Source: Basidiobolus meristosporus CBS 931.73
Lineage: Eukaryota; Fungi; Basidiobolomycota
Reading direction: 5' to 3'
NCBI GenBank assembly: GCA_002104905.1
Contig: MCFE01000145.1
Span: forward strand, 1 to 64,000
DNA: 64,000 nt
Part shown: positions 4,728-63,409 of the stretch, in pieces
Layout: each line of letters starts with the position of its first letter
Position numbering within the stretch: the first letter of the stretch is position 1
Notes under the pieces: model-generated
Told to the model about the DNA's origin: nothing
The model's input: only the letters and a program-made list of their open reading frames with translations
Databases searched by the model: none
Made by a program: the position numbers and the translations under genes

Positions 4728-4839
4728 ACAGGCTCTTCTTACTCAACCTTTTTAAATCTGTTCATCATTTGGGTTTCTATGTTTGATTAATAATCTGTCC
4801 TGGTTTGTGGCAGATGGGCTTACTAAGTATAATGATGTG

Positions 4840-5770: not shown

Positions 5771-5837
5771 AAAGAAATGGTTGAGTCAGGTAGTCAATCA
5801 ATGCACACATATGTAGTAGGTGATAGAGTGTCTGGGA

Positions 5838-36260: not shown

Positions 36261-36399
36261 AGCAGGTAGACTATATGGGTTGGAACTAATGATTTATTGA
36301 GTGTATTAGTGGTATTTATGCCTTAACAAGGTCTTGACAAGTCAAGTGCCTCAACTATGCTTAGGAAGGTCTTAAGTGTTGTAAGGGTCTTGGAGATAT

Positions 36400-40800: not shown

Positions 40801-41550
40801 TGATGGATTGTCAGCCTATCCTCCCCAACATCAGTACCCTGCATGAGCCTGGCAAATCCCATTATGTAGTGAGACAACACCTGTGGAAAAAAATGCAAAG
40901 GATACTTTATGGAGTCAAGTGAGCCCAGTAAACCATCCACCGGTGAATGATGTGCTCATGTGGCTAGAGAAGTGGAATGTTTTCACTAATATCAGTAATA
41001 GGGGCTTTGAGGATTTACTACTACTTCTTGCTAAAATCATCCTGGGATGCAACTTACCATGTACATGGTATAAATAGAAAACCATACTGCAGCTGGCAAT
41101 ATATGACCCAGAGACTGTCATTATACTAACATGTATTAACAGTTGTATGGCATTCACATCAGAAAATGCCACCATTGCAAGGTGTCCAACATGTCAGGAA
41201 TCCACCACCATTGGGGGAAAACATTGTTCACACTCCAGACATATTCTGGTAATACCCCATATAAAGAAACTCATATGGTCCAACATATATTGTGGAGCTA
41301 TAAAGTAATGTACTCAGTATCAATCATGCACAAACATATCAGATATATATGATAGCACACTTTACATACAGCTAAGAAGCAAGGGCTACTTTGAAGGTAT
41401 TTATGACCATGCCTTTGACTTGGCACATGATGGATTCTCATTAAACATGTACTCAACCAGCTGATCCTGCTGGCCACTGATTCTCATCAACCTGAATCTG
41501 CTGCCCATCTTATGATATCAGAGTAGAAATCTGAGCGTAGTCACACTGCT
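37850..41550 (+). mobile_element. CACTA/EnSpm element copy A (truncated): divergent accessory ORF plus 5' half of the transposase
   Basis: Collinear with 53775-57060. Transposase motifs TCINSCMAFT..ARCPTCQE and the DGFS..WPL..NL region. Many stops. Confidence 0.85.
38161..39039 (-). pseudogene. C-terminal 292-codon open segment of the CACTA accessory ORF
   Basis: Homologous to 54353-54925/54219-54440 and 5535-5695. Upstream parts at 39115-40264 are frameshifted. No recognised domain. Confidence 0.6.
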
Positions 41551-41904
41551 ATCTGGGCCTTGTTGTGCATTAATATTTAAAACTTAGCCTATTTTACTAC
41601 ATTAGAAAATCTAGTACCATAACTGATGTTCCCTGACCCAAACATTACTAAACCCAGTTATAATTTATTATATCACTTCTCAGAATCTATTTTTAGCTGT
41701 CACACCTGATCAATCTTCATGTAGTCATTACATCTTCAACTTATCTGCTAAGCCTTCCAAGTGATTAGTCATCTGAGATCTATCCAACCACTTAGCAGTG
41801 GTCAAGACATCATATGATCAACAATGCAATTTCTCAATTATCTTTTGCACCTCTGAACACCCCAACAGTTTGCAATTAGTGCAGTCTCTTGGCGCTTACT
41901 AATT

Positions 41905-42115
41905 AGACTTGTTCCATTGTGCCATTGATCATAGTGCCAGAAAGTGCTGTATATTTTGTTATTAATTTGATATTTTAGGGTCATATGCATGTCAATTTTG
42001 ATCCCAAATTGGCACTGTATGGCACTGTTGGGCACTCTGTGGCATGATCAGGCACCATCTGGCATGCTATGGCACTATTGGGCACTATGATCAGCTGGAA
42101 TGATGGAACAAGTCT
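41905..42115. mobile_element. 211-bp PHIS-family MITE (short type)
   Basis: TIRs AGACTTGTTCCAT...ATGGAACAAGTCT with ATT/ATT target duplication. Inverted copy at 52521-52731. Confidence 0.9.
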
Positions 42116-42372
42116 ATTCAACTTGATCAGAAAGATGTAAATAAAGTTTACTAAACCGTTTGGTTCAGTGTGTATCCCAATAAAATTAAGATTGTGCCTC
42201 AGCAAAATTAAGAATTCAACAATTCTGTTCTAGTTTCTACCAAAGCCTAGCATAACTAACACTCCTATGAACATCAAGCCTAGATTGCATAGCAAACCAC
42301 TCTGGTGCCTTTATAGTCAAACTCAGCTATATACAAGACCAATATTAGACCAGATGTTCTCTGCTAATATTC

Positions 42373-43104
42373 AGACTTGTTCCGTTGGATAGTGCCACAT
42401 TGAGCCATGAGTGCCAAATGATACCATAGTGTGCCAGGGAGGCCAAGTGAGCCTCCACTTGGCCACAGAGTGAGCAGCACAGCTCTGCATCTTCATGAAA
42501 GCAGCCCCTGTGTTTCACTCACTGTGATGGAGAAAATCCATTTTTCGACCTTTTTTTTTAGGTCAATGTTGTAAAGGATGTGTAAGTGAACAAAAGGATT
42601 AAAGATATGCATCTGGTACTCAATACCCATGGCACTCTGAATCTAGCTCCTGTGGCTTGGAATATGTCACAAAAATGCATGGCACTATCTTGGTCCACTG
42701 GTATTATCTGGCACTATAAGTGCTTTGTATTGATCTTACTTTAGGGCTAATATTTAAATATAGTGCCAAATAGTACCAGTGGACCAAGAGAGTGCTATGC
42801 ATTTTTGTGACATGTTACAAGCCACAGGAGCTAGATTCCAAGTGCCATGGGTATTGAGTAACAGATGTTTATCTTCAATCCTTTAGTGCTCTTACACATT
42901 CTGCACAATGTTGATCCACAAAAAAGCATCAAAAACTGGATTTTCTCCTGCATCATAGGTGAAACACAGGGGCCAATTTGCATGAAGATGCAGATCTATG
43001 TTTCATACTCTGTGGCCAAGTATAGGCTCACTTGGCCTCTCTGGCACACTATGGCATCATTTGGCACTCATGGCTTAATGTGGCACTATTCAATAGAACA
43101 AGTC
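42373..43104. mobile_element. 732-bp foldback MITE (long type) inserted in the Gypsy 5' region
   Basis: AGACTTGTTCC terminus, long inverted arms, central 42-bp loop. ATT is duplicated, slightly irregularly, relative to the empty site at about 770. Confidence 0.9.
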
Positions 43105-43249
43105 ATTTATGTAGCCCTTGAAAATTCCAAGATTCTGCGCTTAGTTGTCACTTATGTTCAGTTAACTCAATCAAGAGCTCATTACACTTTTCTCTTGAAT
43201 ACAACATTTTTTTGTTGAATTCCATTACATTCACCACTTCTTACAATGT

Positions 43250-45790
43250 CCTCAGCAGCAAGCAATCTAAATATTTACATGCCGCAACAGCCAGAAAAGA
43301 GAGCAGTCATGTGACCAAGAAGCAGCCACCCACTACAAAGCATTGTGAACTTCAGGGAAGATGTTATCATTCTACTAGTGAATGCAAAGGCCTGACTAAG
43401 CAGTTAAACAAGTCAGGAAACATGTCAGGGAAGCAGCAAAACACCAAAACTGATAATCTATATGCCAATGACAAATGCTTTAAATGTGGAAAGATGGGAC
43501 ATGGATCACCAGCATGTCCTGAGAAGTACTCCACACCATTGGCAAAAATTACTCAGATTCTAGATGATTGTTCAACCAATGAAATGACAGGGTATCAGAA
43601 GGCATATGAACAACTGCCAGTTCATGACTATCATAACCTCTCTGAATTTGTGGCTAAAATTGCAACTGTTCAAGATAAGAGGCAACCACTTGCGCAGCTA
43701 AAAGCTATAGAGGTGCCACTCAAACTCAACAGCCAATCATATGTAACACTACTGGATACTGGATCATCAAACTCTATTGTATCACCTAATGTAGTCACAG
43801 AAGTCAAATTGGAAATAGAGAAGCAACCAGGAGATATCATACTTGCAGCTAAAGACCTCTCAGCCCCAAGAATTGGTATCACCAACCCAATCAGCATGCA
43901 TTGTGGCTCAATGACTAAAATCCATTGAATGGAAGTTATTAACATTGCAGATGGACCTCAAGTAGTCATTGGTCTAGACACCTTCACCAAACTTGGCTTT
44001 CACATTGGCAGACTACCAGTTTCATATCCTGGAGTCACTATATCTCAGCCACCCATTATGGATCAGATTCTAGAGATCATCTTGCCCCATCTGGAAGCAG
44101 AGGAGTCAACCCCAGTTTTTTAAGTGTATTCTTAATCAGTCATATTGAATATTCAGCCAGCCATAGAAAGAAACCAAGCCATTCCTAGGAACAGTTTTTG
44201 CACCATTCCAGAACCCATTGTTATGCTAGAAACCCCACCTGGTGAGTTAACATGGAGGAGGCAATACCCAGTTCCATATTCTTGTCAATGCTTGGTTCAT
44301 GAAATAGTCCAAAAGTGTGCTGACAATGGAACTATCACTCAAACCCCTGTCAACACAACAGTTAGCAGCCCTCTGATGCCTGCATCCAAGAAGGATGCAA
44401 ATGGAAACCTAACTCTGAAGAGATCCTGTTAGGACCCTAGACCTCTGAATCAACTTCTCCAAGATGATAAATTTCCAGTTCCAAGAGTCCAGGATATCTT
44501 TTCCTCACCATCAGGAGCAAAACTATTCTCCAAGTTGGACTTGAAGGATGCACATCATCAATTCCAGATCCATCCAGAGCATCAGCATAAGACTGCCTTT
44601 ACTTGAAATAATATGCAATGGATGTTTCAGAGTGCTCCCTTTGGCCTAAAGACACTTGCCAGTAAGTTCCAGACAGTGATGACCATAATCCTCAAGAATG
44701 CACCATATGCCTTGGTATTTGTTGATGATGTCATCATATTTTCCACAAACCAAGCTGAGCATGCAACTCATGTCATTTATGTAAGCAATAGACTGACAAC
44801 TGCTAGACTAATTCTCCATGCGGAAAAGTGCAGTTTTGCTTGCCTCAAAATCTATCTAAATGAATATGTAGTCACACTGGATGGCTACCAACTCAACCCT
44901 TTCAGACTGGTCAGTATTCCTGAGTGGCCAAAACCCACTAGTGCTAAGCAACTCCAAAATTATCTTAGACTATCTGACTATTTCAAGGAGCACATGCCTT
45001 GCATGTCTTCATTGAGTGCCCCTTTGAATGCATTACACCATAGTCCTGATCTTCCCCCAGCCTGAAACAAGGCTTATGACCAAGTATCTGAGTCACTCTG
45101 TCAATAGCCCCCACAAGCACCCACCCTATCCTACCCACACTTTGCTAGGACCTTTGTTGTAACTACAATGTATCTAATGTTTGGTTAGGGGCTGTCTTAT
45201 ACCAGGATGAAGACCAAAGTCCACCTGACTGGATCTCCTTACAAGCCAGATCCCTACAACCTGCTGAGAGAAACTACTCTGCAACTAAGAAGAAGCTACT
45301 TGCCATAGTCTTTGCCTTAAAGAAGTCTCATCAGTACTTATGGGATAACCTTTTTACCTTGTACACTAAACACCAAGCCCTTGCTTATATCCAGACTCAA
45401 AAGACTCTGACTCCAATGTCTGCCAACTGGCTTGATACTCTACTTGATTGTGAATAGAAAATTATTCATCACCCAGGAATCCTCAACATCCTGCCTGACC
45501 GCCTTTCAGCTCTTTTCCCAACTTCACCTTGGGAGGGACATGTGATTACTGACATAATCAGTGTGTTCACTACAACTTCCAAAATAATTCCTCAACTGGA
45601 TTCAGCAACATGGAAAATCCCACATGCCAATGAAAGGAAAACATTGGTACTGAGGAGTCATGTACTTGGCCACTTTAGAGCTGACACACTTATGAAGAAG
45701 CTACACTCCAATGGATATCACTGGCCAAATATCAAAGCTGACTGCCTAGAACTTGTCAAGCCTTGCAGAGAATGTCAGCTTTACTGGTAA
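43250..45790 (+). mobile_element. Degenerate Ty3/Gypsy retrotransposon gag-pol (integrase truncated)
   Basis: Zinc knuckle CFKCGKMGHGSPAC, protease LLDTGSS, RT motifs DKFPVP, FSKLDLKDAHHQF, APFGL and FVDDVIIFS, RNase H NYSAT..LLAIVFAL, integrase HVLGHF..CRECQ. PR-RT-RH-IN order; many stops/frameshifts. Confidence 0.92.
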
Positions 45791-45812
45791 GTTAAGAGCT
45801 GCCTGATAAAAT

Positions 45813-46323
45813 TGTTATGAATAGACACAAGGCAGGAGAGTAGGGCTAGGAAAGGCAGGACCAGGAAAGGACTTAGGTGTGGATCAACAAGGCAAGGCTG
45901 TTTATTTAAGTCCTGAGTTTATCAGACTGAGGAATACAAAAGGGGAGATAGAACTATATATACTTTTTGGCAATATAGATGGCAAGAGATATTGACTAAT
46001 ACTAATGGGGTTCTGGGATGAGGCACAGTAGATGTGCCAAGAGAGAAATACACTAAAGAACAGACTAGACCAACACATGGGGATATGTCATGAGTTGGCT
46101 GATCAGGTGACTAGGTCATGTGACACGTAACTATTGTATATGGCACTGAGCCACATAAATACTAAAGGGAAGCTTCCATAAAATGATCCATTGTGAAATG
46201 TTTACTTGGAGCTTTCCAGAAGCTGCTAGAATGTAGTAGAACTTTCTAGAAGGAACCAGGATTTCTTCACCAACTTGATTTGGTCAAATCATGAAAGGTC
46301 AAGGATATCATGCAATCATGACA
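45813..46323 (-). mobile_element. Probable solo LTR of another family at the Gypsy/Copia junction
   Basis: TGTTATGA...TCATGACA ends, with TATA-like and AATAAA-like signals on the minus strand. Flanks AAAT/AGAT are only an imperfect duplication. Confidence 0.4.
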
Positions 46324-46399
46324 AGATCAGAACTGATTGCTCCAGTTAGGAGATCTACTGGAGTAATAAATGGCCTTGGATCTTGGTGGCAGACACTCA

Positions 46400-47997
46400 A
46401 TAAATGTGATGAAGCATATCTTGCCTTATGTGCCCAACCTTAAAATCTGGAACAGCCAATACAAAGTCCAGATACTACTATATGCCAACAAGCCATGTAG
46501 GAGGAGTTCCAGTCACTAATAATGGCAAAAATGGTGCACCTGGTATATATACCAAATGGGACAAAGCCAATAGAATACAGATAGGTCTACAAGATCAAGC
46601 CAACCTCAATTGGTTCTGTTGATAAGTACAAGGCTATATAGATGGCCAAAGGCCATTCATAGCTCCAGGGGCTAGAGCATAAGGTAACAATTACTCTGAT
46701 TGCCAGATTGAGCCCCATTAGGACTGCTCTAGGCCTGGCAGATGCACACAGTCTAGATCTACACCAAATGGATGTCAAAGCAGCCTTTTTATAGGGGATC
46801 TGCAGGGAATTATACATACAGAACAACCAGAAGGTTTTACAGCCCAAAAGACCCTTATAAGGTGTGCAGACATAGAAAATTGCTGAATGGGTCTATGCAG
46901 GCACCTATAGAGTGGTAACACACAGTTGACATATATCTAGAGGTATTTGTTCCTTTATAGCACCACAGATACTGCATATATATTGAGCAGCTTATAGCAG
47001 AATGATTATCCTAGTACTTTATGGGGACAACCTATTCATAGGTACAAGTGACCAAGAAGCACTTAGACAGACAGAATCAGACCAATACAGCAAATATGAG
47101 ATATAAGATATTTGAGAGTAGAGTTATTTTCTTGGAAATGAAGTCAACTTGTCATACCTACATAGAAAATTGTGCTGAATCAGTCTGAGTAAATCAGGGA
47201 TATTCCCAGAGGCTTCAAGATGGAAAATTACAAGCCTGCAGAGATCCTTGTGAATAATAACCTGAAACTGAGCAAATCTCAGCCAGTTTTGAGTGAATCA
47301 GCTCAAACTTGGAGCAAACCTTTTGCTATCAGTCAATGGCTGGTAGCTGATGTACCTAATAGTGTCCACACATCCAGCTATTTAGTGGCAGATTGAATAG
47401 TCAGTCATTGAAGCATAAAAATGGATCTGATTAAATTGCTATAGTTAAGCAAATCTTCAAATATCTGCATGATACCATTAATATGGATCTGAAATACTCT
47501 ACAGCAGGTAATAAGCAACAGATAATGGCTATACAGATTCAGATTAGGGTAGGGATCTGATTGATTGATGCTCTACCACTGAATATTAATTCTATCAGCT
47601 GGTGCAGCTACTACTTGGATTTGCAAGAAACAACCAACTGTGGCCCTCTTGACAACTGAGGCAGAATACAAGGCTTCTTGTCAAGGAGTTAAGGAGGCTG
47701 TATGGTGACAAATGATGCTGAGAGACCTAGGTATTGGCCCAGAGGAGCAAATATGTATTTACAAGGATAATCAAGGCTGTATTTGTTGGCTAGAAACCTT
47801 ACTATTCATGCCAGAACTCAACACAATGATATACAACACCTTTTTGTGAGGGAAGCTATAGAAAATAACTTAGTAGAGTTGGTTTACTGCCCAGCAGACA
47901 AAATGGTGGTAGATATACTGAGATAGTCACAAGCTTGGCCACAATTGGATAATCTCACAGCAAAATTGGGATTAAACATTATTTAAATCAGGAGAAG
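46400..47997 (+). mobile_element. Degenerate Ty1/Copia RT-RNase H region ending in a polypurine tract
   Basis: GSVDKYKA..AKGHS, LDLHQMDVKAAFL, YTDSD, CKKQPTVALLTTEAEY and DNQGCI motifs. Purine tract AGGAGAAG followed by TG at about 47998. Confidence 0.9.
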
Positions 47998-48921
47998 TGA
48001 TGCAAAATTGGACTCTTTAGTAACTTTTGGCAGCTAAAATTCTACTGGACAACTTGGGACTAGTGAATGTCACTGTAGGACAAATTTACCGCCCAAATCT
48101 TGCCCATTTTCTTCAGATTTATCATCTCATCATTATTCCCCTACAATCAAGATCAAGTTAGCACTTTTACCAAAAATTAGACTTGTTCCATCGTACCATG
48201 CCAGGGCACGTGGCGCAATCCGCGGTCGCAAAGAACAATCGGGCGCAATATTATAGCTACCAGAAGGCAGGATTGTTCTTGGACAATTTTGCACTATGCG
48301 GGACGATCTTGCACACTATGGCACAATCTGACACGATGAGGTTGGCGCAGATGATTGCGCCAACTTGTAATGTTTGCATCACGTGCGCAATCAGATACCG
48401 CTATAATGGCAGGTAAAATCCGGTATAATGATATGTTTCTATAATGTAAGTGGAAATAAATGTGTATCACACTATAAACTATACTGATACTTACCATTTT
48501 GGTTACCCTCACTCCAATTGGACGGTATCTCAGTGGTTAATTGGTCCAAAAGTATCCTGAAGCTGGCAGCCCCCAATTGGCTCATTGACTACTGAGAAAG
48601 CTACCTGATTTGCCATTAAATATCCCATTTTGCCCATTGAGCAAGTAAATCCCTGATCCTAGTGATTGGACAAGGTGTCATAGCTAGCACGCAAGCGATT
48701 GTGTAGGTGCAAAACAGATCCAATAGCTGCACTGGTAGTACAGATGACGTATATATATGCAGGGTGTTTATTTATAGGGGTTCTGTCTCAAATGTGAGAC
48801 AACCTTGATATTACGTATATCAAAAATTTGATGATCACTGATTTGCAATGGCTCAATTTGGATCGCAAAAAAAAAGGGTTGTCGGGATCATTACAAATGT
48901 GAGCAATTCAAAGCAATCGCA

Positions 48922-49935
48922 TCATCTTCTCCTGGGTTTTTTTCTCACAGGGATTACTACTGAAGCATTTGGTAGTGACTCACTTTGCACACCTATACTA
49001 CTTCCTGGCTGACTATCATCTTGGCTACTTGTGTATTTGTAGTCAGTATTTTGCCTCCTAGTTGATGAGTGCGATGCTGCAGCTTGGCCGTGCTGAATTG
49101 CTCCGACTGAACCAACTGAACCGGCCTGTAGTCCCACGCGCTGACGCATTCTTTTACTTGCCAAGGGCTCCGGTGGTTGAGGCACTTCATGTTGGTCATC
49201 ATCAGTCAGTTCACCAGAAGTAACTCGCTGATGGTCAGGCAAGACGGCACGCACAGGCGCGCCTTGACACGTTGAGATGGCCCTTGGCTGAGTTTGATGT
49301 GATGCCGCATGTTGACGCAACTCGGTCCGCTCCAATGGACTCGTGTCTAAATGAGCAGTTTGGCAAGTTCTTGTAGTTTTGCTCTGAAGCACGCGCTTTG
49401 ACCCGACGCGCGTTGACTCAACGCGGGGCGTTCTGGTAAAGGGTGTTGGCGTACTCTGGACTGACATGTGCCGGCGCGCTGTGGTTGCAAGAGATGGTAG
49501 GGAATCCAGCGAGGCGTGCTGGCGCAATCTGGACAATGTTGCTCGCGGTCTGTATTCTTCCTCCTGAAGCTCACCATCTGATTCCTCAAGGTATTCACTT
49601 ACCCTCTGTCTGATACTTTGGAGCTGTTGCCTGGATGAGTCCTGTGTATATTGCTCTTGGAAGCCACTTAGCTCTACTAATATATCACGTAGTACATTAG
49701 TCATTTGAGGCAAAAACTCATTCAAAATCTCTTTGGTTCCCAAAGTTGAGGCACAAACGGACGCGTCTGGCCCGTACTGTGCAAATTGCGCGCAAAATTG
49801 TTCCCGCGTGGCTTCTTTGTCAAATTCCCTCACTCTCAGCTCATTCTTGATTTCAATACTTGTCTTGTTATATATCTTTTTACATACATCGGCTGGCATC
49901 TTGATGTAGAACTCATGCCACAGCTTTCTACTCAA
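48922..49935 (-). CDS. PHIS accessory ORF2 (N-terminal SAP/HeH-like helix pair, long disordered tail)
   Basis: 337-codon open frame (first ATG at 49899). KTSIEIKNELRVR(E/G)FDKEATREQF resembles a SAP motif (inference). An in-frame upstream extension (49951-50169) is cut by one TGA that is also present in the second copy. Confidence 0.7.
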   Translation of the reverse strand: MSRKLWHEFYIKMPADVCKKIYNKTSIEIKNELRVREFDKEATREQFCAQFAQYGPDASVCASTLGTKEILNEFLPQMTNVLRDILVELSGFQEQYTQDSSRQQLQSIRQRVSEYLEESDGELQEEEYRPRATLSRLRQHASLDSLPSLATTARRHMSVQSTPTPFTRTPRVESTRVGSKRVLQSKTTRTCQTAHLDTSPLERTELRQHAASHQTQPRAISTCQGAPVRAVLPDHQRVTSGELTDDDQHEVPQPPEPLASKRMRQRVGLQAGSVGSVGAIQHGQAAASHSSTRRQNTDYKYTSSQDDSQPGSSIGVQSESLPNASVVIPVRKKPRRR

Positions 49936-50528
49936 ATTCTTCCATCTTTGTCAACTCTCTGAGGTATCTAGTTCTGCTAGATTAATCAGTAGTGCCCAAA
50001 TATCTGTATGAAGGCTCATCATAGACACTTGGGCCATACTAAAATCATTTGGCAAGAACTCAAACAGATCTGACATCAACTTTTCCGGTCCGGACCGCGC
50101 TTGTGAGCTGGGGGATGGGTTTTGTCTGGGTTGTACTAAAGATGAGTTGAGGCTTGGTATGGGGACCATAGCAACGGATTTGGATACTTATACAGCAGTA
50201 TATTGGCATCAACCTGGTCTTATATGAAATATATATGAAAACTAAAGTGATTGTTGAATTTTCCATATATTATGCATGATGCATCTTGGATCGCATTGAT
50301 ACGGATCAGGTCACATCAATCGCAGATTTCCTATTTGATTATAGACCTATGATTAAAGCATCAATAAAAGTACCAAGGCATTGTTTGCGGATGATTTTTG
50401 CAACATAATGATGGGATACATGGCAATTGATTGAGATTTAACCAAAATGTGTTAAAAATCAGATAAATAACTCAGATCACGCCAAATCAATTCAAACCGC
50501 CTTCATACAATCATCCATCAATCTTAAT

Positions 50529-51413
50529 ATGACTTACTCATCTGAATGGTCTTTTCTCATCAATCCCATCACTACCACTGGATTTCCTTTTGACACACTG
50601 GAGGAGATCTATACCAAGTACTGTGGACCATCAACCCCAATCTACTCAAGGAGATCCCTTGTTAAGCTTCTCTGCTATTACAAGAACTATTGCCCCACAA
50701 GGTTTCATCCCACCATCCATGGCAACAAAAGTCCTAGAAGCTTTCATTCCCAGCTGACAGCAATGGAGAACCACCTTGCAGAGGGTATGAATGACTTAGA
50801 GCAAGCTTGCAATACTAGGTTCAGAAGCTCCAATAGACTTCCATATCCCAGAGTGTTCAGCAACAGGTTCCATATAAGGGGTATTTTGGATACCTTCCCA
50901 GTGAGGATTAACAGACCTTCTAGAGGGCAGTGGCACTTTTATTCTGGCAAGTACAAGGCACACTGTGTGAAGTTTCAAGCACTGTCTGACATTGAGGGTA
51001 ACATCATCTGGTTTAGTGGGCCATTTGCTGGAAGTAGGCATGACAAAGCACTCTGGGTAGAGAATCATCCTGAATTCAGTAGAGGGGAGAAATGTATGGC
51101 AGACTTAGCCTATATAGGAGAGGATTGTCAGAGATTATGATGTATTACAGCTTATAGGAAGCCAAGGAATGGTGTGCTTAGCAGGAAGCAGAAGCTCTAC
51201 AATGAGATTTTTAATCATTTCAGAGTAAGGGTAGAGCACACATTTGGATATCTGAAGAGATTCAGCATATTGGCAGGTAAATACAGAGAAAAGTCATATA
51301 TAGGAGAAAACAGCAGAATAGGTAAAATAGTTAAGATACTTATTAATGCACAGTATGTTCATACAAGAAGACATCCACTAAGAGAAATGTGTCTGGAGCA
51401 TTATGAAGAGTAA
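50529..51413 (+). pseudogene. DDE_Tnp_4/HARBI1-like transposase with a single in-frame TGA (51138-51140)
   Basis: GILDTFPVRINRP, FYSGKYKAHCVKFQ, FSGPFAGSRHD, MADLAYIG and YNEIFNHFRVRVEHTFGYLKRFSIL. The two ORF-track entries are one continuous frame. Confidence 0.9.
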
Positions 51414-51734
51414 ATAAAGCAAGGAAAGCACTATTCTGAGCAACATAAGTAAGATTGAGTAAAATTACCAGTAACTGTATCATACCACTGGCATCATGGT
51501 AGAAATTATAGTGCCAGATGATGCCGTAGTGTGCCAGATTGATCCGGCATTATAAACAGGCTGGCACTATGTGGCACTATCCAACAGAACAAGTCTATTA
51601 TGTACTAACCCTGAATCCATTACACACTGCTGCTGAATGTTGAGAAACTCTCCTTACTTGGTGTTACAGCTGTATTACTTCTACAAAGGTATAAATACTG
51701 AGCCTCTGTATTAATCAATGACAGTTGAGCTATT

Positions 51735-52468
51735 AGACTTGTTCCATTGGATAGTGCCACATTGAGCCATGGGTGCCAAATGATGCCATAGTGCGCCAGA
51801 GAGGCCAAGTGAGCCACTACCTGGCCACAGAGTGTGAAACATAGCTCTGCATCTTCATGTAAAGCAGCCCCTGTGTTTCACCCATTGTGTTGGAGAAAAT
51901 CCATTTTTTGACCTTTTTTTTTGGATCAATGTTGTGCAGGATGTGTTAGAGCACAAGCAGATTGAAGATATGCATCTGGTACTCAATACCCATGGCACTC
52001 TGAATATAGCTCCTGTAGCTTGTATCATGTCACAAAAAGGAATGGCACTATCTTGGTCCACTGGTACTATCTGGCACTATAAGTGCTTTGTATAGATGTT
52101 ATGTTAGGGCTAATATTTAAATATAGTGCCAGATAGTACCAGTGGACCAAGATAGTGCCATTCATTTTTGTGACATGATAGAAGCTACAGGAGCTAAATT
52201 CAGAGTGCCATGGGTATTGAGTACCAGATGCATATCTTCAGTTCTCCTGTGCTCTTACACATCCTGAGCTACATTGATCCACAAAAAAAGGTCAAAAAAT
52301 GGATTTTCTCTTGCGCAATGGGTGAAACACAGGGGCTGCTTTGCATGAAGATGCAGAGCTATGTTTCACACTCTGTGGCCAAGTATGGGCTCACTTGGCC
52401 TCTCTGGCACACTATGGCATCATTTGGCACTCATGGCTCAATGTGACACTATCCAATGGAACAAGTCT
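51735..52468. mobile_element. 734-bp foldback MITE (long type)
   Basis: Arms 51735-52080 and 52123-52468 (346 bp each) around a 42-bp loop. Flanks ATT/GTT. Confidence 0.9.
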
Positions 52469-52520
52469 GTTATCATTTATCAACACTTCTTGAATTTCTA
52501 CAGTTTTAAGATAAGGAAGT

Positions 52521-52731
52521 AGACTTGTTCCATCATTCCGGCTGATCATAGTGCCAAATAGTGCCTTAGCATGCAAGATGGTGCCTGATCATGCCACAGA
52601 GTGCCAGATGGTGCCATACAGTGCCAATTTGGGATCAAAATTGACATGCATATGACCCTAAAATTTCAAATTAACAATAAAATATACAGCACTCTCTGGC
52701 ACTATGATCAATGGTACAATGGAACAAGTCT
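52521..52731. mobile_element. 211-bp PHIS-family MITE (short type)
   Basis: Inverted copy of 41905-42115, with AGT/AGT target duplication. Confidence 0.9.
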
Positions 52732-52952
52732 AGTGAGGAGTCTCACAAAGAACCAATTAAAAGCCTCTTATGTACCTTCTTGAAAAGTGACTCAAACCAG
52801 ATTTATTATGTGATCTAAGGTTATGGTCAGGCAAAATGTCCTTACAGCATCAATATCTCTTGATCATTAAATTTGAATCTTGTAAGGGACATTTGACAGG
52901 AACAGCCCAATTAGCTTATATAGGGGTAATTAGATGCATACTCTAGGATATT

Positions 52953-53685
52953 AGACTTGTTCAGTTGGATAGTGCCACATTGAGCCATGAGTGCCAAACA
53001 ATGCCATAGTGTGCCAGAGAGGCCAAGTGAACCTATACTTGGCCACAGAGTGTGAAACATAGATCTGCATCTTCATGCAAAGCAGCCCCTGTGTTTCACC
53101 TATGATGCAGGGGAAAATCTATTTTTGACGTTTTTTTGTGGATCAATGTTATGCAGGATGTGTAAGAGAACAGAAGAACTGAAGACATGCATCAGGTACC
53201 CAATACCCATGGCACTCTGAATCTAGCTCCTGTGGCTTTTAACATGTCACAACAATGCATGGCACTATCTTGGTCCACTGGTACTATCTGGCACTATATT
53301 TAAATATTAGCCCTAAAGTAAGATCTATACAAAGCACTTATAGTGCCAGATAGTACCAGTGGACCAAGATAGTGCCATGCATAGTTGTGACATGTTAAAA
53401 GCCACAGTAGCTAGATTCAGAGTGCCTTGGGTATTGAGTACCAAATGCATATTTTCAATCCTTTTGTGCTCTTACACATCCTGCACAACATTGACCTAAA
53501 AAAAAAGGTCAAAAAATGGATTTTCTCCAACACATTTGGTGAAACACAGGGGCTGCTTTGCATGAAGATGCAGATCTATGTTTCACACTCTGTGGCCAAG
53601 TATAGGCTCACTTAGCCTCCCTGGCACACTATGGCATCATTTGGCACTCATGGCTCAATGTGGCACTATCCAACAGAACAAGTCT
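52953..53685. mobile_element. 733-bp foldback MITE (long type)
   Basis: Same arms; loop in the opposite orientation to the 42373 and 51735 copies. ATT/ATT duplication. Confidence 0.9.
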
Positions 53686-53774
53686 ATTATGTACCTCAAG
53701 ACAATAATGGATTACTGTAGCCCAAAACCTCCCACCTTTTTATTCATACCCATACTGCAAGATCCAGTAACTTT

Positions 53775-56700
53775 CACTATGAGAAATTATTGAGATGATC
53801 CTGTCAAAAGGCCATCACAAAGTTAATGTCCCATGACTGAGAGGTACTGAACTCATCAGGACACTGTCCAGAGATTGTTGAAAAATAATTGCACCCCAGA
53901 TATCACAAAAAACTTTGTCAGAATTTTTGATCATAACAATGTGTAAGCGGCTTTTGATTGGTTCCCTGCCAATTTGCTCACTTTCTGATCCCAGACACTC
54001 TATTGCCTCCTATGTTTGTGTCAAGTGATTGGCTATTGCCTCTTCCTCATACTCCTTACTTCCTGACTCAACCGTTTCTCTTACTTTTCATGCGTACAAA
54101 CTGATTTATTTCCGTTGAAACTTCAGTTGCACCTCAATTGCCAATTGTATTGACCTATACAAGTCTCTATACCATACACTAACATTAAGCCCAGCCCCAC
54201 ACTCAACAAGTAACTCCATTAAAATTCACCACTCAATAAGTATTTCTGCTGTGACACTCTGGTTCCACAACTTTGGTGGGAACCCAATGGCTTTATGCCA
54301 CTTTTCATTACTGGTTCCCACATGTCATGGTCTTCAGCCAGCACTGCAAGGTCTAGCTCCTCATCTGCCAGTCTTTGCAATAAATCCTTGAAATATTCCA
54401 GTGCGTTTTCTTGAGCACTGCTCTTGAAGAAGTGCTGCAACCTCTTGGTGTGCCTATTAATGTTCCAAACTCCACTGAAGGCATTGTGATAGTCTTTTGC
54501 GCTCTTGATGTTGTAGCCTTGTCTGTCAGTGGGATCTCCACTCTGTCAACAATGGAGTCTGTGGAGGCTGTGGTAGACAAATTGCCTTTTTCCGCAAACT
54601 CATCTACATTGCTGGAGTGTAGCTCAACTGGCTGCGCTTCCAACTCATGTGAAAACAGCTGTTTTCTTGTTAGTAATTCTTCTTGGCTATGATGGGATTC
54701 AGTCTGTTCCTGGCTTGCAGCGTTAAGTGGCAAGAACTGCAGTTTTTTTTGCATGCCTCCCTGTCTCAGGCTTGGGTAGACATTTTTCCCTTTGCCTTTT
54801 CCTTTATCAATCCCAGGTCTTTCACTGCTACTTTGACTGGGTGCTTCTTGAATGGCACTACGCTTTTTCCTTGATAAATGTTGTGCTGGTGCATCCATGT
54901 CTGCTGGCTTGTCCTTAATTGACACTCTTTCAGCTGCCTGATGTCTCTTTGACGCTTATCTGGAGCTTTTGGCCCTGCTTGTAACAGGCTTTTGAGGAAG
55001 CTGCCAGTTTTTAGCCATGGCACCCTTGTTCTTCTGCCTTCAATAGTTTCTGCTATTCTTAAGATACTTTCTTAGTATACCAATGCTGGCCCAAAATCTG
55101 TTTGCCCATTTGAATCCAGGATAATGCTCATGGAACAAGTCAAGTGCATTCTGCTTGGCCTTGAGTTCCTGATGGTCCCATGGTATGCCGGCCTCAAAGT
55201 GATGGTGAGCCAGACTTCAGACAGCCTCTTAAATATTACCCCACTCTTCATTATTGCACTCAACAGCTTCACAGATGTTCAATGTCTTTTGATTTTTAGG
55301 CTTGGGTACAAGCACCACATGGTCTCCCTCCCACTCTGTGATAGATATTTCTGTGGGCTTTATCTTTGGGCACTGTTGTTGTGCCTCAAAGACTGTACAG
55401 TGTTCCTCTGCTGTTACATTGGGAAATGGCTCAATCCTTGGATGTTACATTGAGCTACTTGAGTTCCTTCTTTGCATAAAGATACTGCTTTCTCTACCTT
55501 GGATATTGATTGCTCTACACATATTATCTGCTCATCCTGTTTCTGGACTACTTTCTGATTTCTCTGGGCCATTGCATCTATCCTATCAGCTACTGTACCT
55601 ATTTGCTTCATTAATGCTTTAGTATAAGCTGACAATGTACTTGCCAATATGGGTGGTGGTAATGTTGTCATGGCCACTTGCTGATCTTCAACAGAGGGTA
55701 CTGCGTTTGCTACATTCTCATCTGCCTGAACATAATGATCAGCTTGTGGCTCTGCAGAGGTTCTCAGTTGCCTACTTGACTGAGAGCCTGAGGAGTCCGG
55801 ATTATTAACTTCAATGGGCACACTGTCCACAGGGCCTTTTTTGGATGTAGCCCTGCTTGTTACACTGAATGTCAAAGCAAGCTGTGGTCCAACAGTTCTT
55901 CTGTTGCCATCAGCAGTGGGGTTTGGTTGGGAACCAGAAAACTTTGCTTTATTTTTTGGCAGCATATATATGGAAGTGAGTCAAACCAAAGGGGAAGTAG
56001 TGTTACATATACATGTGTATGTGGTGCCACAACTTTATTTATCATGCTTACTATTGCGGGTCATCATTGAATCTTACATTCATGTAGGTGCAATGTCTCA
56101 GATAGAAGACTGTCTTAAGTTCACATGAGTATTGAGCAAAAAGTGATATAATAGCATTACGTTGTTGAAGGTCAAACTGTTTGCCCATCGACAAGACTAC
56201 TTTGACTCAATGCTGTAAGAGAAGAGAAAAAAGACCATGTGGCTATTGTGGCAAGCCTATCAGCCATGAAGCATGCAGACAGCATAGGAAGTATTACAAG
56301 GATCACGGCCAGTGTTTTGCCACACAAGTCATATTTGACCATTCATTGGTCACTACTGTACCAACATTATCTTGCCAGCCAGTTGATACTTCTATATTGG
56401 CACCTGGCCATCTTTGTCACCTTGCATAAACTGAGTCAGGTGAGTTTGTGACGCCTTTAGGCTCACCTCAGCCTTCTGAATATGGCATGCAGAGTGATAG
56501 CTCTGACACAGAAGGTTCACTGATGGATTTTGAGCCTATCTCCCCTAACAACAGTACCATGTATGAGCCTGGTCAAATCCCTTTATGCAATAAGACAACA
56601 CCCGTTGAAACAAATGCCAAGGATACTTTATGGAGCCAAGGGAGTGCAGAAATCCATTGACTGGTGAATGATGTAATGTTTTGGCTAGAGAAGTGGTGTG

Positions 56701-58760
56701 TTTCCACTAATATCAGTAATGGGGGCTTTGAGGATATTACAACTTCTTGCCAATATCATACTGGAATGCAACTTACCGTGTACATGGTACAAGTTGACAA
56801 CCGTCATGTGGCTGCCAACATATGATCCAGTGACTGTCCAATATATTTGACTGCAAACACTAAAAGCAGCTAAGAAGCAAGGGCTACTTTGAAGGTATGT
56901 ATGACCATGCCTTTGCTTTAGCTCTTGATGGATTCTCATTAAACAAGAACTCTACCAGCAAATCCTGATGGCCACTAATTCACATCAATCTGAATCTGCT
57001 GCCCATCTTATGGTATCAGAGCAATAATCTGATAGTAGTCTCACTGGTATCTGGGCCAAAATCACCATCCAACCTGGATAGCTACCTGTATCCATTGCTG
57101 GATAAACTTTGTATGCTTTCCAGCAGGATAACAATAAATGGCCATCATGTAAAAGCACATATTATTATCTGAATTGGAGATACCCCAGGCATCAGCAAGA
57201 TAGCAGGTTTTTCTGGGCACAATGGATGGTATTGCTGTTGAATGTGTGAGATCCAGGGGATCTACTCCATAACTCACACACATTATTATTACCCAAACAC
57301 CAGCACTAACAACATTCTCTTTCCACAGAGAGAACGTACAGAAGTAAGCATGCAAATGCAGCAAAGTTGGCAAGCTATAAGCCATTGGCCAGAATATGGA
57401 ATCAATTGGAAACCGGAGATACTTAAGATAGAGGGTATCTGTTGGAAAAAAAGCTTTTCACTGGGAGCAATGCATTTGATGTTCAACAATATGCCTATAC
57501 TGATGACCAAGTAGTACATGGGGCATTTCAAGCAAAATGAGCCCTTCAAGATACCGGAGAAATTTGAAAAAATTGGCAAGATATTACAGAGTATCTGCTA
57601 CCCTAAGTACTTCTCATGGGCTCCAATTAATATTCATATGCATATGCAACAATACAAATGCAAAGACTGGATGAACTGGATATGTATTTATTCAAGTGGT
57701 GTTGTGAAGCCATTCCTACCAAGAGTATATTGGAAGTATTGGGAGTCATATGTGGACAATATTGGAATATTTATCCAGAAACGGATCACCAATGCCAACT
57801 TAACGCATCTACAGCTGTTATGTGAGTAGCTTGTAACAGGATTGAGTGGCTATACTACAAACATAAAGCTGAACTTGTAGATTTCTGTCGCTACTGTATC
57901 CATTCTCTACTCCATCTTGCATGGTGTGTGGAGAATATTGGGCCTTGCTTCACCTTTTGGGAGTTTCCTATGGAGCAGATGTGTGGGGAGATATGAAGAC
58001 AAGTCAAGTTGCAGGTACTACCATATCCCAATCTCATTAAGAATATTACCTTCAAGTCCGTCATTGATGTGATGAGTTTGCAAATGGAGGACAGCCAGAA
58101 AGAGTTGGAAAATGCTGAGGACAAATGAGCACATGGAGACACCTATGCCTATGGCATTAATAGACTAAGCAGCCCCAATGCGTGGGTAATCAGTTAAGTA
58201 ATGCAAAGTTGGGTTGGGTGCAACAAGCAACTAATTTTTATCAGTAAAACTTCACCAAGATATGCTGGATTTCTCATGGTTACAAGCCAACTTCTACACT
58301 ATTCAATACAGAATTCACACAAACAAAAGCCAGAGCGCACCTAAAAGGGGGACTAGAATCCAGCAGGGAGAAGGAATATATTGGCTAAATACCAAGAAGT
58401 TCTTTGCCAATATTCCGGAGGTATTCATGGCAGAAGTGGCAACAACCAAGCATACGTTTGCAAGATGCATATGCTACCAGCAGTACAAAGTATATGGCAA
58501 CTTTGCAAGTATCACACTAAAAAGCGGCAAAGTTGAGGTGATAGAAGTATGTCAATTGTGGCAGGTGTGCGCATTTGTAGAGGTTAGTAAGCCGGAGGTC
58601 ATAGTTTTTTTTGATTTAAACTATATGTGGAGTACCTAAGGTAGTAGTGGGTAAGCAAATAAAGAAAGATGATTCTTCAGTGGAATATATGAATTGCACA
58701 AGGGGAGGTAGAAAAAGGAAATACCATTTGGTAAATTGGTACAGTAGCATTATACACAAC
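53775..58760 (+). mobile_element. CACTA/EnSpm element copy B: minus-strand accessory ORF (about 55965-54050) and plus-strand Tnp2-type transposase pseudogene (about 56090-58760)
   Basis: CGYCGKPISH zinc finger, ALALDGFSLN..WPLIHINLNLLP..SGPKSPSNLDSYLYPLLD (Transposase_21-like) and EWLYY..CIHSLLHLA..IGPCFTFWEFPMEQMCG..LPYPNL. Internally deleted and decayed; termini not identified. Confidence 0.9.
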
Positions 58761-58911: not shown

Positions 58912-59991
58912 TGTAGTGGGGTCACAGTGACACCCCCAGGCAGATGTGCTCATTCTCATGCGTTCACTTCCCTAAAAAGGATTACCCCCCCTATATTATT
59001 ATCATCCCAAATTTGCAATATTTCCTATTTTTGTCTATGTGATTATTACTATACAACCTGACAAACTATTTGTCACTATTAACCCATTGCACAAGCTATT
59101 CTTATTCCTTGCCGAGATGCAAAGATAAGATAGTTACCATATAAGGCAAGTACCCCAACAGTGCCCATGTCATGTGACCGTCTTGGTTTCATAACCTTCC
59201 CATCTTACTACCATAAGAGGCAACCACATGACACAGAGGTTTCATATTACCACTACCTGATTGGCTAGGTGCTACTATGTCTCATGGAACAATCCGCCAA
59301 GAATTTGCGCTATTTTTAGTACACAAAGACATGATTGGTTGTCTACCACCTTCTGGAAACTTCTGGAAAGTATTTTCTAGCAAGAATCTGAGCAGCAAAA
59401 AAGTATATAAGGGAGGCTATCCCTTAAAATAAATCATCCCTCTTCCAATATTCAGACTTATTGATTAGTGAGATCACCGCTACCTATTACCACTATTTTC
59501 TGACTCAGACCTGACAATACTCCCAGGAAACCGCGCTGACAGCCAACTGACCTTGGAGGCACTACTTGTGAGGAATACTCAGAGTAGGTATATTTTATTA
59601 TATTTGATTATTTTCCCAAGTTTGTTCTTGTACAGGCAGAGAAACTTTTCAGTCTTTGTAACTATTGGTCAAAGCTGCATTCTTATCAAGTCCCTGTTGG
59701 TGGAGTTTACAGTTGTTTTGACTTTGGAAGCTTTAGTACATTGTCATCTCAAAGGACGTCAAAGCCATTATAAACTTTTGTTAAGACGCCAACTAAGTTG
59801 GGGATTGTAGTTCAATAGTTTTCCCTTGACAAGCTTGAGGCTTTATCCCCCTTCACACTAGATTAGACAAAAGATCCAGTATTCCTAGCAAGCTTTTGCC
59901 AGAGGTTATCCCACCCAGTGAACACCCCACACACATTCACACTTGAGAAGTGTTGGCCGTATTTTGCCCTTTGGACTTATACAACACCACA
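58912..59991 (+). mobile_element. Solo LTR, 1080 bp
   Basis: TGTAGTGG...CACCACA ends with a perfect CCGC/CCGC target duplication. About 95% identical by eye to 60396-61474. Confidence 0.92.
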
Positions 59992-60395: not shown

Positions 60396-61474
60396 TGTAG
60401 TGGGGTCACAGTGACACCCACAGGCAGATGTGCTCATTCTCATACATTCACTTCCCTAAAAAAGGATTACCCCCCCTATATTAGTATCATCCCAAATTGC
60501 AATATTCTCTATTCTGTCTATGTGATTATTACTATGCAACCTGACAAACTATTTGTCACTATTAACCCATTGCACAAGCTATTCCTATTCCTTGCCAAGA
60601 TGCCAAGATAAGATAGTTACCATATAAGGCAAGTACCCCAACAGTGCCCATGTCATGTGACCGTCTTGGTTTCATAACCCTCCTATCCCACTACCATAAG
60701 AGGCAACCACATGACACAGGGGTTTCATATTGCCACTACCTGATTGGCCAGGTGCTACTATGTCTCATGGAACAATCCGCCAAGAATTTGCGCTATTTTT
60801 AGTACACAATGACATGATTGGCTGTCTACTACCTTCTGGAAACTTCCGGAAAGTATTTTCTAGCAAGAAATTGAGCAGCAAAAAAGTATATAAAGGAGGC
60901 TATCCCTTAAAATAAATCATCCCTCTTCCAATATTCCGACTTATTGATTAGTGAGATCACTGCTACCTATTACCACCATTTTCTGACGCAGACCTGACAA
61001 CACTCCCAGGAAACCGTGCTGACAGCCAACTGACCTTGGAGGCACTACTTGTGAGGAATACTCAGAGTAGGTATATTTTATTATATTTGATTATTTTCCC
61101 AAGTTTGTTCTTGTACAGGCAGAGAAACTTTTCAGTCTTTGTAACTATTGGTCAAAGCTGCATTCTTATCAAGTCCCTGTTGGTGGAGTTTACAGTTGTT
61201 TTGACTTTGGAAGCTTTAGTACATTGTCATCTCAAAGGACGTTGAAGCCATTATAAACTTTTGTTAAGACGCCAACTAAGTTGGGGATTGTAGTTCAATA
61301 GTTTTCCCTTGACAAGCTTGAGGCTTTATCCCCCATCACATTAGATTAGACAAAAGACCCAGTATTCCTAGCAAGCTTTTGCCAGAGGTTATTGCACCCA
61401 GTGAACACCCCACACACATTCACACTTGAGAAGTGTTGGCAGTATTTTGCCCTCTGGACTTATACACCACCACA
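60396..61474 (+). mobile_element. Solo LTR, 1079 bp, inserted 31 bp inside the PHIS left end
   Basis: TGTAGTGG...CCACCACA ends. Flanks GCAC/GCGC fit a GCGC duplication with one CpG->CpA change. Confidence 0.92.
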
Positions 61475-62675
61475 GCGCATGGCGCAATCCGCATTTGTCA
61501 AGAACAATTGGGCGCAATATTCTAGCTACCAGAAGGCAGGATTGTTCTTGGACAATTTTACACTATGCGGGACAATCTTGCACACTATGGCACAATCTGA
61601 CACAATGAGGTTGGCACAGATGATTGCACCCACTTGTAATGTTTGCATCATGTGCGCAATTGGATACCGCTATTATGGCAGGTAAAATCCGGTATTTGGA
61701 TATGTTTCTTTTATGTAAATGGAAATAAATGTGTATCATACCATAAACTACACTGATACTTACCATTTTGGTTACCCTCACATCAATTGGACAGTATCTC
61801 AGTGGCTAATTGGTCCAAAAGTATCCTGAAGCTGGCAGTCCCCAATTGGCTCAATGACTACTAAAAAAGCTACCTGATTTGCCATCAAATATCCCATTTT
61901 GCCCATGGAGCAAGTAAATCCCTGATCCTACTGATTGGACAAGGGGTCATAGCTAGCACGCAAGCGATTGTGTAGGTGCAAAACAGATCCAATAGCTGCA
62001 CTGGTAGTACAGATGACGTATATATATGCAGGGTGTTTATTTATAGGGGTTCTGTCTCAAATGTGGGACAACCTTGATATTACTTATATCAAAAATTTGA
62101 TGATCACTGATTTGCAATGGCTTGATTTGGATTGCAAAAAAATGGGTTGTTAGGATCATTACAAATTTGAGCAACTCAAAGCAATTGCATCATCTTCTCC
62201 TGGGTTTTTTTCTAACAGGGATTACTACTGAAGCATTTGGTAGTGACTCACTTTGCACACCTATACTGCTTCCTGGCTGACTATCATCTTGGCTACTTGT
62301 GTATTTGTAGTCAGTATTTTGCCTCCTAGTTGATGAGTGCGGTGCTGCAGCTTGGCCGCGCTGAATTGCTCCAACTGAACCAACTGAACCAGCCTGTAGT
62401 GCCACACGCTGACGCGTTTTTTTACTTGCCAAGGGCTCCGGTGGTTGAGGCACTTCATGTTGGTCATCATTAGTCAGTTCACCAGAAGTAACTTGCTGAT
62501 GGTCAGGCAAAACGGCATGCGCAGGTGCGCCTTGATGTGTTGAGATGGCCCTTGGCTGAGTTTGATGTGATGCTGCATGTTGACACAACTTGGTCCGCTC
62601 CAATGGACTTGTGTCTAAATGAGCAGTTTGGCGAGTTCTCCTAGTTTTGCTCTGAAGCACATGTATTGACTCAAT

Positions 62676-63409
62676 AGACTTGTTCCGTTGGATAGTGCCA
62701 CATTGAGCCATGAGTGCCAAATGATGCCATAGTGTGCCAGGGAGGCCAAGTGAGCCTACACTTGGCCACAGAGTGTGAAACATAGATCTGCATCTTCATG
62801 CAAAGCAGCCCCTATGTCTCACTCATTGTGATGGAGAAAATCCATTTTTAGACCTTTTTTTTTAGGACAATGTTTTACAGGATGTGCAAGAGCACTAAAG
62901 GTTTGAAGATATGCATCTGGTACTGAATACCCATGGCACTATGAATCTAGCTTGTGTGGCTTGTACCATGTCACAAAAATGCATGGCACCATCTTGGTCC
63001 ACTGGCACTATCTGGCACTATATTTAAATATTAGCCCTAAAGTAAGATCAATACAAAGCACTTATAGTGCCAGATAGTACCAGTGGACCAAGATAGTGCC
63101 ATGCATTTTTGTGACATGTTACAAGCCACAAGAGCAAGATTCAAAGTGCAATGGGTATTGAGTACCAGATGTATATCTTTAATCCTTTAGTGCTCTTGCA
63201 CATCCTGCACAATATTAATCCACAAAAAAACATCAAAAAATGGATTTTCTTCTGCATCATTGGTGAAACACAGGGGATTCTTTGCATGAAAATGCAGATC
63301 TATGTTTCACACTCTGTGGCCAAGTATAGGCTCACTTGGTCACTCTGGCACACTATGGCATCATTTGGCACTCATGGCTCAATGTGGCACTATCCAACGG
63401 AGCAAGTCT
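62676..63409. mobile_element. 734-bp foldback MITE inserted in ORF2 of the second PHIS copy
   Basis: AAT/AAT duplication. The empty site is visible in the first copy at about 49415-49430. Confidence 0.92.

Follow-up and report, generated by a model that had tools for sequence, protein, structure and literature searches.

Introduction

Many genomes defend themselves against repeats by mutating them at CpG, and whether a transposon can evolve to escape such mutation has so far been mostly a matter of conjecture (e.g. Horns et al. 2017). The question is raised sharply by one stretch of the genome of the fungus Basidiobolus meristosporus CBS 931.73, the first 64,000 nucleotides of contig MCFE01000145.1 (assembly GCA_002104905.1, forward strand; hereafter the window). 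This window holds a 3,418-bp DNA transposon of the Pangu/Harbinger2 type in which a transposase gene without a single CpG stands beside a CpG-rich half carrying a second open reading frame (ORF2). How did the transposase gene come to hold none of the targets of such mutation, and is this condition a property of the transposon lineage or the decay of a single copy?

In the Pucciniomycotina, a process resembling repeat-induced point mutation (RIP) changes C to T at CpG, strongly favouring sites preceded by T, and acts on repeats only (PMC3318451; PMC5381629). Selection for transposon variants that shed the target sites of this hypermutation was predicted by Horns et al. 2017 (PMC5381629). B. meristosporus has CDCA7F, and species with CDCA7 nearly always have DNMT1 and HELLS (PMC10538959), which gives indirect support from the literature for a CpG methylation machinery in this organism.

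Here, we describe a computational analysis of the element, its relatives and the CpG landscape in which it lies. We are confident of the descriptive core of this analysis: the identity of the element, the inherited and derived nature of its CpG-free state, the recoding of the transposase with its arginines kept, and the death of the copy in the window. The mechanism that we propose is held with less assurance and is weighed against its rivals below.

A transposase gene without CpG

The element and the parts of it that concern the transposase are as follows.

48179-51596, plus strand: complete Pangu/Harbinger2-type element of 3,418 bp, with terminal inverted repeats (TIRs) and target-site duplications (TSDs); contig flanks diverge after 51597 and 51599, and homology to a second copy starts inside the left end
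50529-51413, plus strand: DDE transposase gene, a pseudogene in the window copy; 294 codons and TAA; both pieces match Pfam DDE_Tnp_4, and the product is 61% identical to P0001, an intact protein of 294 amino acids
50499-51524, plus strand: CpG-free zone, which takes in 30 nt ahead of the ATG and 111 nt past the stop codon
50889-50891, plus strand: first catalytic Asp, D121, in a column invariant in 21/21 relatives
51102-51104, plus strand: second catalytic Asp, D192, in a column invariant in 21/21 relatives
51234-51236, plus strand: catalytic Glu, E236, in a column invariant in 21/21 relatives

A first-pass annotation of this locus, made from the letters alone, had claimed that the gene contains no CG and that all of its 27 arginines are encoded by AGA or AGG. 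Both counts are correct: there are 0 CG across 885 bp, and the arginine codons comprise 16 AGA and 11 AGG with no CGN. The second count carries no information beyond the first, because a sequence without CG cannot hold a CGN codon. The CG-free gap extends beyond the gene, from 50498 to 51525 (1,027 bp), such that the nearest flanking CpGs lie at ATG-31 and stop+112.

The broken gene was searched as two pieces, and the in-frame stop was read as X in alignments only. Pfam DDE_Tnp_4 matches both pieces, and matches to DDE_Tnp_1 (IS4/IS5-type) are weaker. An exact database look-up of the 203-amino-acid piece returned no record, and a word search with the same piece found one relative only, P0001. 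Arginine makes up 9.2% of the protein, a share like that of its relatives; the coding sequence (CDS) also matches its relatives, and differs from its decayed neighbours, in observed/expected ratio (O/E) for TpG (1.05) and CpA (1.51). The annotation had further described the catalytic motifs as intact apart from one TGA, which holds for the DDE triad, kept in its invariant columns, and fails for the protein at large, in which we found further private missense changes.

How remarkable the absence of CpG is depends on the background chosen. The window is bimodal. Positions 1-6000, 36000-48090 and 50499-57000 have a CpG O/E of 0.02-0.08 with TpG and CpA O/E of 1.4-1.6, and the host-gene block at 6000-35500, whose ORFs include one for a sugar transporter and one with SH3, has a CpG O/E of ~0.8 (0.55-0.96 in single host ORFs, with CGN for 12 of the 19 arginines of the transporter). 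The switches between these regimes occur within ~1 kb. A transporter ORF in the window shares 97% identity with a protein of B. meristosporus CBS 931.73 and has its next matches in B. ranarum, which confirms Basidiobolus as the host genus. The probability of 0 CpG in 885 bp is ~8e-9 at the window-wide rate, ~6e-14 at the rate of host genes and ~1e-12 at that of the left half of the element itself, and rises to ~0.2 if the transposon DNA around it sets the rate; five longer CG-free gaps occur elsewhere in the window. Zero CpG is therefore remarkable only against host genes and the rest of the same element, and the real oddity is the CpG contrast inside one young element of 3,418 bp. Its other side consists of the following.

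48179-50498: CpG-rich half, comprising the left subterminal region, ORF2 and the divergent intergenic region; 83 CpG, GCG-rich and TCG-poor
48922-49935, minus strand: ORF2, the partner gene, 337 codons; 47 CpG (O/E 0.77); 15 CGN and 18 AGR arginine codons

The 47 CpGs of ORF2, which the annotation had put at roughly 40-50, are distributed evenly across codon positions.

A derived CpG-free state, shared with a sister family and maintained

An exhaustive representative search with the intact P0001 yielded 1,671 relatives. In a tree of unnamed relatives, the window transposase groups with P0001 and a further sister protein, P0151, in a clade with 99/99 support. The window transposase and P0001 share 61% amino acid identity at saturated synonymous divergence (pS 0.78; nonsynonymous divergence, dN, 0.29), and the P0001 and P0151 genes contain 1 and 0 CpG in 885 bp, with 25 AGR codons. 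Outside this clade, seven distant relatives for which DNA is at hand (38-51% identity) show CpG O/E of 0.57-1.07 and 3-28 CGN codons. The recoding proposed by the annotation is thus not contradicted by either of the two findings that it had named as evidence against it.

The arginines were kept as the CpGs were lost. In a 21-sequence alignment, each of the three clade members has arginine, encoded by AGR, in the columns in which arginine is conserved in 18/18, 18/18, 17/18, 16/18, 14/18 and 12/18 outgroups; in those outgroups for which DNA is at hand, about half of these positions carry CGN. P0001 and P0151 differ at a synonymous divergence (dS) of 0.14 and a dN of 0.012 (dN/dS 0.083), and none of their 23 synonymous differences creates a CpG, an outcome open to 18-23% of synonymous single-base paths (P 0.002-0.012). 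The conserved arginines kept as AGR, the CpG-free sister family and the low dN/dS support the earlier proposal that this gene was recoded under purifying selection and did not merely decay. These sequence comparisons show that the family inherited its CpG-free state, that this state is derived, and that it persists under purifying selection.

The same comparisons bear on the possibility that the composition was imported, the transposase having been transferred horizontally from a donor poor in CpG, so that it displays donor codon usage and not the outcome of events in Basidiobolus. Pangu elements are patchily distributed (PMC4482050), and the GC content of the transposase CDS (0.42) is below that of ORF2 (0.49), as such a transfer could explain. 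We nevertheless regard an imported composition as very improbable. Two subfamilies at saturated divergence are both CpG-free, and the state must therefore have been actively maintained; moreover, all seven sampled outgroups are CpG-normal, and new synonymous CpGs do not accumulate.

The copy in the window is dead

The window copy differs from its family at the following positions; family variants were read from 40 of ~800 variant rows.

51138-51140, plus strand: in-frame TGA, codon 204; a Gly column in relatives, with G at 51138 in contigs from a second organism
50810, plus strand: private change of the window copy, C here and G in ~99% of family read depth, giving Cys in place of the family Trp; P0001 has Trp
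50931, plus strand: private change of the window copy, T here and A in ~99% of family read depth, giving TGG (Trp) in place of AGG (Arg); P0001 has AGG

At position 50880, nearly all family read depth also differs from the window copy. Codon 166 (51024-51026) encodes Phe in the window copy and His, within an SGPH motif, in 19 of 21 relatives.

The first-pass annotation had suggested that the lone TGA is a former CGA. This was not borne out, because the relatives have Gly in that column, encoded by GGT in the sister family and by GGC or GGA in several outgroups, and the G at 51138 in the second organism agrees with them. Two ways around the stop were also considered: a mini-intron of 24 nt, in frame and bounded by GT..AG, that would remove the TGA was rejected on the colinear alignment and the Gly column, and reading of the TGA as an amino acid was rejected since the relatives align colinearly with Gly and the gene stops at TAA. 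Likewise, the codon for W135 (TGG) was considered as a CGG-to-TGG footprint and rejected, the family majority having AGG. The nonsense and private missense changes of the window copy are all non-CpG, necessarily so. With a nonsense change and two or more private missense changes relative to its family, the window copy is dead, although the family itself looks live.

That the copy is broken invites the plainest of explanations, an old dead fragment whose CpGs were deaminated after insertion with no recoding at all; the adjoining transposon DNA is equally CpG-free, with its longer CG-free gaps and another ORF, of 292 codons, with 0 CpG. We considered this explanation and rejected it, leaving it hardly any probability. 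The left half of the same copy still holds its 83 CpG, the conserved arginines and the DDE triad are all kept, the CDS has no excess of TpG, neither the stop nor any of the private missense changes is a CpG transition, and intact relatives at a dN/dS of 0.08 are just as CpG-free.

Hypermutation of CpG in repeats

The window also contains part of another copy of the element.

61480-64000, plus strand: second, older copy of the CpG-rich half, interrupted by a miniature inverted-repeat transposable element (MITE) and running off the window end; 32 CpG versus 70 in copy 1

In the aligned parts of copy 2 (61480-62660 and 63415-64000), 36 of 63 CpGs have changed, 35 of them to TG, CA or TA, at a non-CpG divergence of 4.1%; the reverse difference, a CpG in copy 2 that is changed in copy 1, occurs at 5 sites. 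The ORF2 of the second copy is thus eroding, as the annotation had noticed. The losses depend on context, TCG being lost at 13/16 sites versus 23/108 for ACG, CCG and GCG combined (Fisher p = 5e-6; 48211-50011 versus copy 2, one copy pair), so that an excess of C-to-T change at TpCpG, the mark of a RIP-like process, is found in this small sample. Consistent with this context, 8 TCG are retained in the depleted DNA versus 841 in the host part. Neurospora-type RIP directed at CpA was rejected, as there is no excess of TpA (O/E 0.78 window-wide). Together with the blocks of CpG O/E 0.02-0.08, the losses in copy 2 support the earlier claim that this genome destroys the CpGs of repeats.

ORF2 of copy 1 bears the same signature: TCG accounts for 10% of its CpG contexts versus 32% in host DNA, and GCG for 46% versus 22%. 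Since it is already poor in TCG, ORF2 must have been exposed to hypermutation before. The process resembles that of the Pucciniomycotina in its C-to-T change at CpG, its strong 5' T preference and its restriction to repeats. It differs in that the host belongs to another phylum, every NCG context is eventually lost, and one gene has reached zero targets.

The split between the two halves is conserved and apparently maintained

The contrast within the window element recurs in its sister family. Upstream of the sister transposase, CpGs reach to ATG-16, with 24 in 667 bp (O/E 0.96), and downstream the first CpG lies at stop+105 or +135. Because ~110 nt of non-coding 3' sequence have been purged along with the gene, the purge appears to concern the transcription unit and not codons alone.

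Two comparisons among sister sub-lineages illustrate the fate of the upstream CpGs. Between L004 and L001, 4/6 upstream CpGs are kept at 13.4% flank divergence, so that CpGs show no hypermutability on propagating lineages. L005 (1-294) and L004 (374-667), from different runs, encode an identical protein, and 8/12 upstream CpGs have been lost in L005; there are 19 differences in 294 upstream positions, 16 of them transitions, and 1 in the 885 positions of the CDS. In this pair, hits that fall on the CpG-rich part and spare the transposase are seen directly, although the contigs are possibly consensus paths.

Has the left half simply arrived too recently to decay? On a mosaic origin, the transposase module would be old and long purged, and the left half (ORF2, promoter and left end) would have been repeatedly replaced or captured and be too young for decay. 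ORF2 indeed has no detectable homologue: we found no Pfam match (and by Pfam no Myb/SANT, MADF or TET/JBP-type domain), no homologue by word search and no look-alike in the Atlas. By BLASTP it shows no similarity to the 86-amino-acid upstream ORF of the sister family, despite the 61% identity of the two transposases, whereas in two outgroups the partner ORFs are similar to one another. However, the sister family is likewise CpG-rich upstream, and contigs from the second organism align at ~83% identity in ORF2 and the intergenic region versus 85-87% in the transposase region, a similarity that implies that the halves have travelled together for a while. The TCG-poor composition of ORF2 also argues against a recent arrival. 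A mosaic origin is thus improbable, if less so than an imported composition, and the annotation's suggestion that ORF2 was recently acquired is weakened by the CpG-rich upstream region of the sister family and the ORF2-region contigs of the second organism.

Four candidate accounts of the split remain: CpG-island-like protection of the left half together with a methylated transposase body, direct selection, a greater homology-dependent exposure of the conserved CDS, and modular turnover of the left half. We favour the first, in which the left half would be protected in active copies and the transposase body methylated. It has a counterpart in vertebrate methyl-CpG deamination (PMC12582260), where a CpG-depleted body adjoins a CpG-rich, presumably unmethylated island that decays once silenced. 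The island here would differ in its size, 2.3 kb with a whole second gene, and the depleted unit in having exactly zero CpG.

A proposed mechanism and its rivals

We propose the following sequence of events. The host genome drives rapid C-to-T change at CpG in repeated DNA, most strongly at TCG, with methylation as the probable cause. In the ancestor of the window family and its sister family, this mutation pressure and selection at the protein level would have emptied the transposase transcription unit of CpG. Synonymous CpGs could have gone by the silent route, from NCG to NCA within a codon and from NNC followed by G to NNT followed by G across codons, and essential arginines would have ended as AGR, immune to CpG mutation. 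Each change from CGR to AGR would lock its site, making the process a ratchet. Copies hypermutated later would lose their upstream CpGs, and the transposase sequence, offering no targets, would stay untouched; the sequences compared above show that in dead copies the hits do fall on the CpG-rich half. A target-free gene may in this way prolong the supply of transposase, and the left half would enjoy CpG-island-like protection as long as a copy propagates and decay only after silencing. Taken as a whole, the mechanism by which CpG/TCG mutation and purifying selection emptied the transposase unit of its targets has in our estimate about an even chance of being correct.

Several observations weigh against this mechanism. 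The left half is CpG-rich in two families, and uniform hypermutation with purifying selection predicts a faster loss in unconstrained DNA; between sister sub-lineages, the upstream CpGs are as stable as other sites (the 4/6 kept at 13.4% divergence). The persistence of CpG in the unconstrained left half calls for a factor specific to that region. ORF2, though presumably transcribed as well, has not been purged. In addition, the contigs of the sister family and outgroups are short (0.7-2.4 kb), L004 and L005 were ascertained by their identical protein, and the consensus of the window family was seen through the 40 variant rows, with 51138 and codon 166 outside them.

A rival explanation is direct selection, under which CpGs anywhere in the transposase unit would be selected against for attracting silencing or hypermutation and the target-free gene would be an adaptation, a counter-defence and not a by-product of mutation. 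As a corollary, propagating copies would never be hit, and the left half would for that reason retain its CpGs. Upstream CpGs that are not hypermutable on propagating lineages, a CDS that nevertheless gains no synonymous CpG, the conservation of the split across saturated divergence, and the shedding of target sites foreseen by Horns et al. 2017 (PMC5381629) are all in keeping with this explanation. Against it, the benefit per CpG would be small and shared in trans with competitors, and it is therefore hard to see selection strong enough for a complete purge. The purge also reaches ~110 nt into 3' non-coding sequence, beyond what robustness of the protein alone would call for, and ORF2 shows no such CpG avoidance. 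Direct selection is a tentative alternative, to which we give appreciably less weight than to the proposed mechanism. No more probable, and likewise possible at best, is a two-compartment design in which direct selection keeps the transposase unit CpG-free as a heritable counter-defence and the CpG-rich half is also actively kept, perhaps to serve as a methylation-sensitive promoter or a module of binding sites; such an arrangement would be stable across saturated subfamilies.

CpG-directed repeat mutation and the Pangu/Harbinger2 group are already known. What is new is a zero-target transposase beside a target-rich half, conserved across subfamilies and in agreement with the prediction in PMC5381629; we found in the literature no published description of such a transposase maintained by selection next to a target-rich half. 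A parallel is offered by fungal DNA transposons carrying a TET/JBP dioxygenase (Kojima 2025, PMC12730594), which also belong to the Harbinger/PHIS superfamily and apparently counter cytosine methylation. Those transposons carry an enzyme that removes 5-methylcytosine, whereas protection here is apparently passive, through missing targets. An abundant, apparently recently amplified family in which one gene stands at zero targets under purifying selection, with the target-rich half as an internal control, makes the question of escape testable within one organism. It also means that in such genomes CpG O/E is unusable for dating or classifying transposon genes.

Ends, abundance and group membership of the element

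The termini of the element, both read from the sequence, are as follows.

48176-48178: left TSD, ATT, found again at 51597-51599
48179-48189, plus strand: left TIR, AGACTTGTTC, with its reverse complement at 51586-51596; a terminus common to four MITEs and to the sister-family contigs
51586-51596, minus strand: right TIR
51597-51599: right TSD, ATT

The left end thus reads ATT followed by AGACTTGTTC (48176-48189) and the right end GAACAAGTCT followed by ATT (51587-51599); the sister-family contigs terminate in GAACAAGTCT and then ATT or AAT. The TIR is perfect at both ends and continues as an imperfect extension with GTGCCA-type subterminal repeats. The motif GCGCAAT, a candidate CpG-containing binding site, occurs 4 times at 48213-48391 in the left subterminal region, 6 times in the element and 15 times in the window.

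When 3,415 nt of the element were used as a mapping query, two runs of a single sample yielded ~24,000 pieces of contigs that aligned to it, about a quarter of them at >=99% identity, about a third at 95-99% and the remainder lower. Dozens of distinct flanks start just past 51597 or 51599 in these contigs, which confirms the right end and indicates that the family is very abundant.

Pangu, which is Harbinger2 in Repbase (PMC12730594), was defined by a 5'-ANT-3' TSD and TIRs of 11-40 bp that mostly start with AG or GG, and its autonomous elements, of ~3.5 kb, encode a DDE-only transposase and a motif-less second ORF (PMC4482050). The element described here has ANT duplications (ATT for the autonomous copy and for MITE3, AAT for MITE4, and ATT or AAT at the ends of the sister-family contigs), a TIR that starts with AG, a length of 3,418 bp, a transposase that matches DDE_Tnp_4 and DDE_Tnp_1 only, and a motif-less ORF2. 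The TWA duplication and the Myb/SANT or MADF partner of PIF/Harbinger in the strict sense are absent, the TSD being ANT and ORF2 having no such match. By TSD, TIR, length and ORF content, the element fits as a putative new member of the Pangu/Harbinger2 group within the PHIS superfamily. It shares with the Pangu elements of Han et al. 2015 (PMC4482050) the ANT duplication, the AG-starting TIR, the length of ~3.4 kb and the two ORFs, and its weaker match to DDE_Tnp_1 agrees with the proximity to IS5 that has been reported for Pangu. That survey differs from our results in including no family from Zoopagomycota-type fungi and in describing neither a CpG-free transposase nor a split CpG architecture.

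MITEs and other features of the window

Non-autonomous elements with the same termini lie on both sides of the autonomous copy.

~42373-43114, 51735-52471, 52950-53691 and 62673-63412: four palindromic MITEs of ~745 bp, each with two ~347-nt arms, a 40-nt loop, Pangu termini (AGACTTGTTC) and ANT duplications
62673-63412: MITE inside ORF2 of copy 2, TSD AAT; the corresponding empty site in copy 1 is near 49420

Two of the MITEs sit head to tail immediately right of the autonomous copy. At the empty site, copy 1 reads AACGCG, and the AAT target in copy 2 (62660-63415) needed two prior CpG mutations. As AAT is absent from the unmutated copy 1, hypermutation made the ANT target into which this MITE inserted.

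The repeat pair at 37858-41559 and 53784-57057 (3.3 kb, 85% identity) retains 5 and 22 CpG and was too CpG-depleted for use in the TCG context test. It contains the 292-codon ORF with 0 CpG mentioned above (38161-39039, minus strand; 16 AGR codons), which has no Pfam match. A remnant of a retroelement gag-protease gene, with a zinc knuckle and an aspartyl protease supported by weak Pfam matches, lies in CpG-free DNA at 43212-43928 (plus strand). Finally, a direct repeat of 300 nt at 59029-59328 and 60512-60811 (96% identity, with 1,483 nt from one to the other) could represent two long terminal repeats or a tandem duplication.

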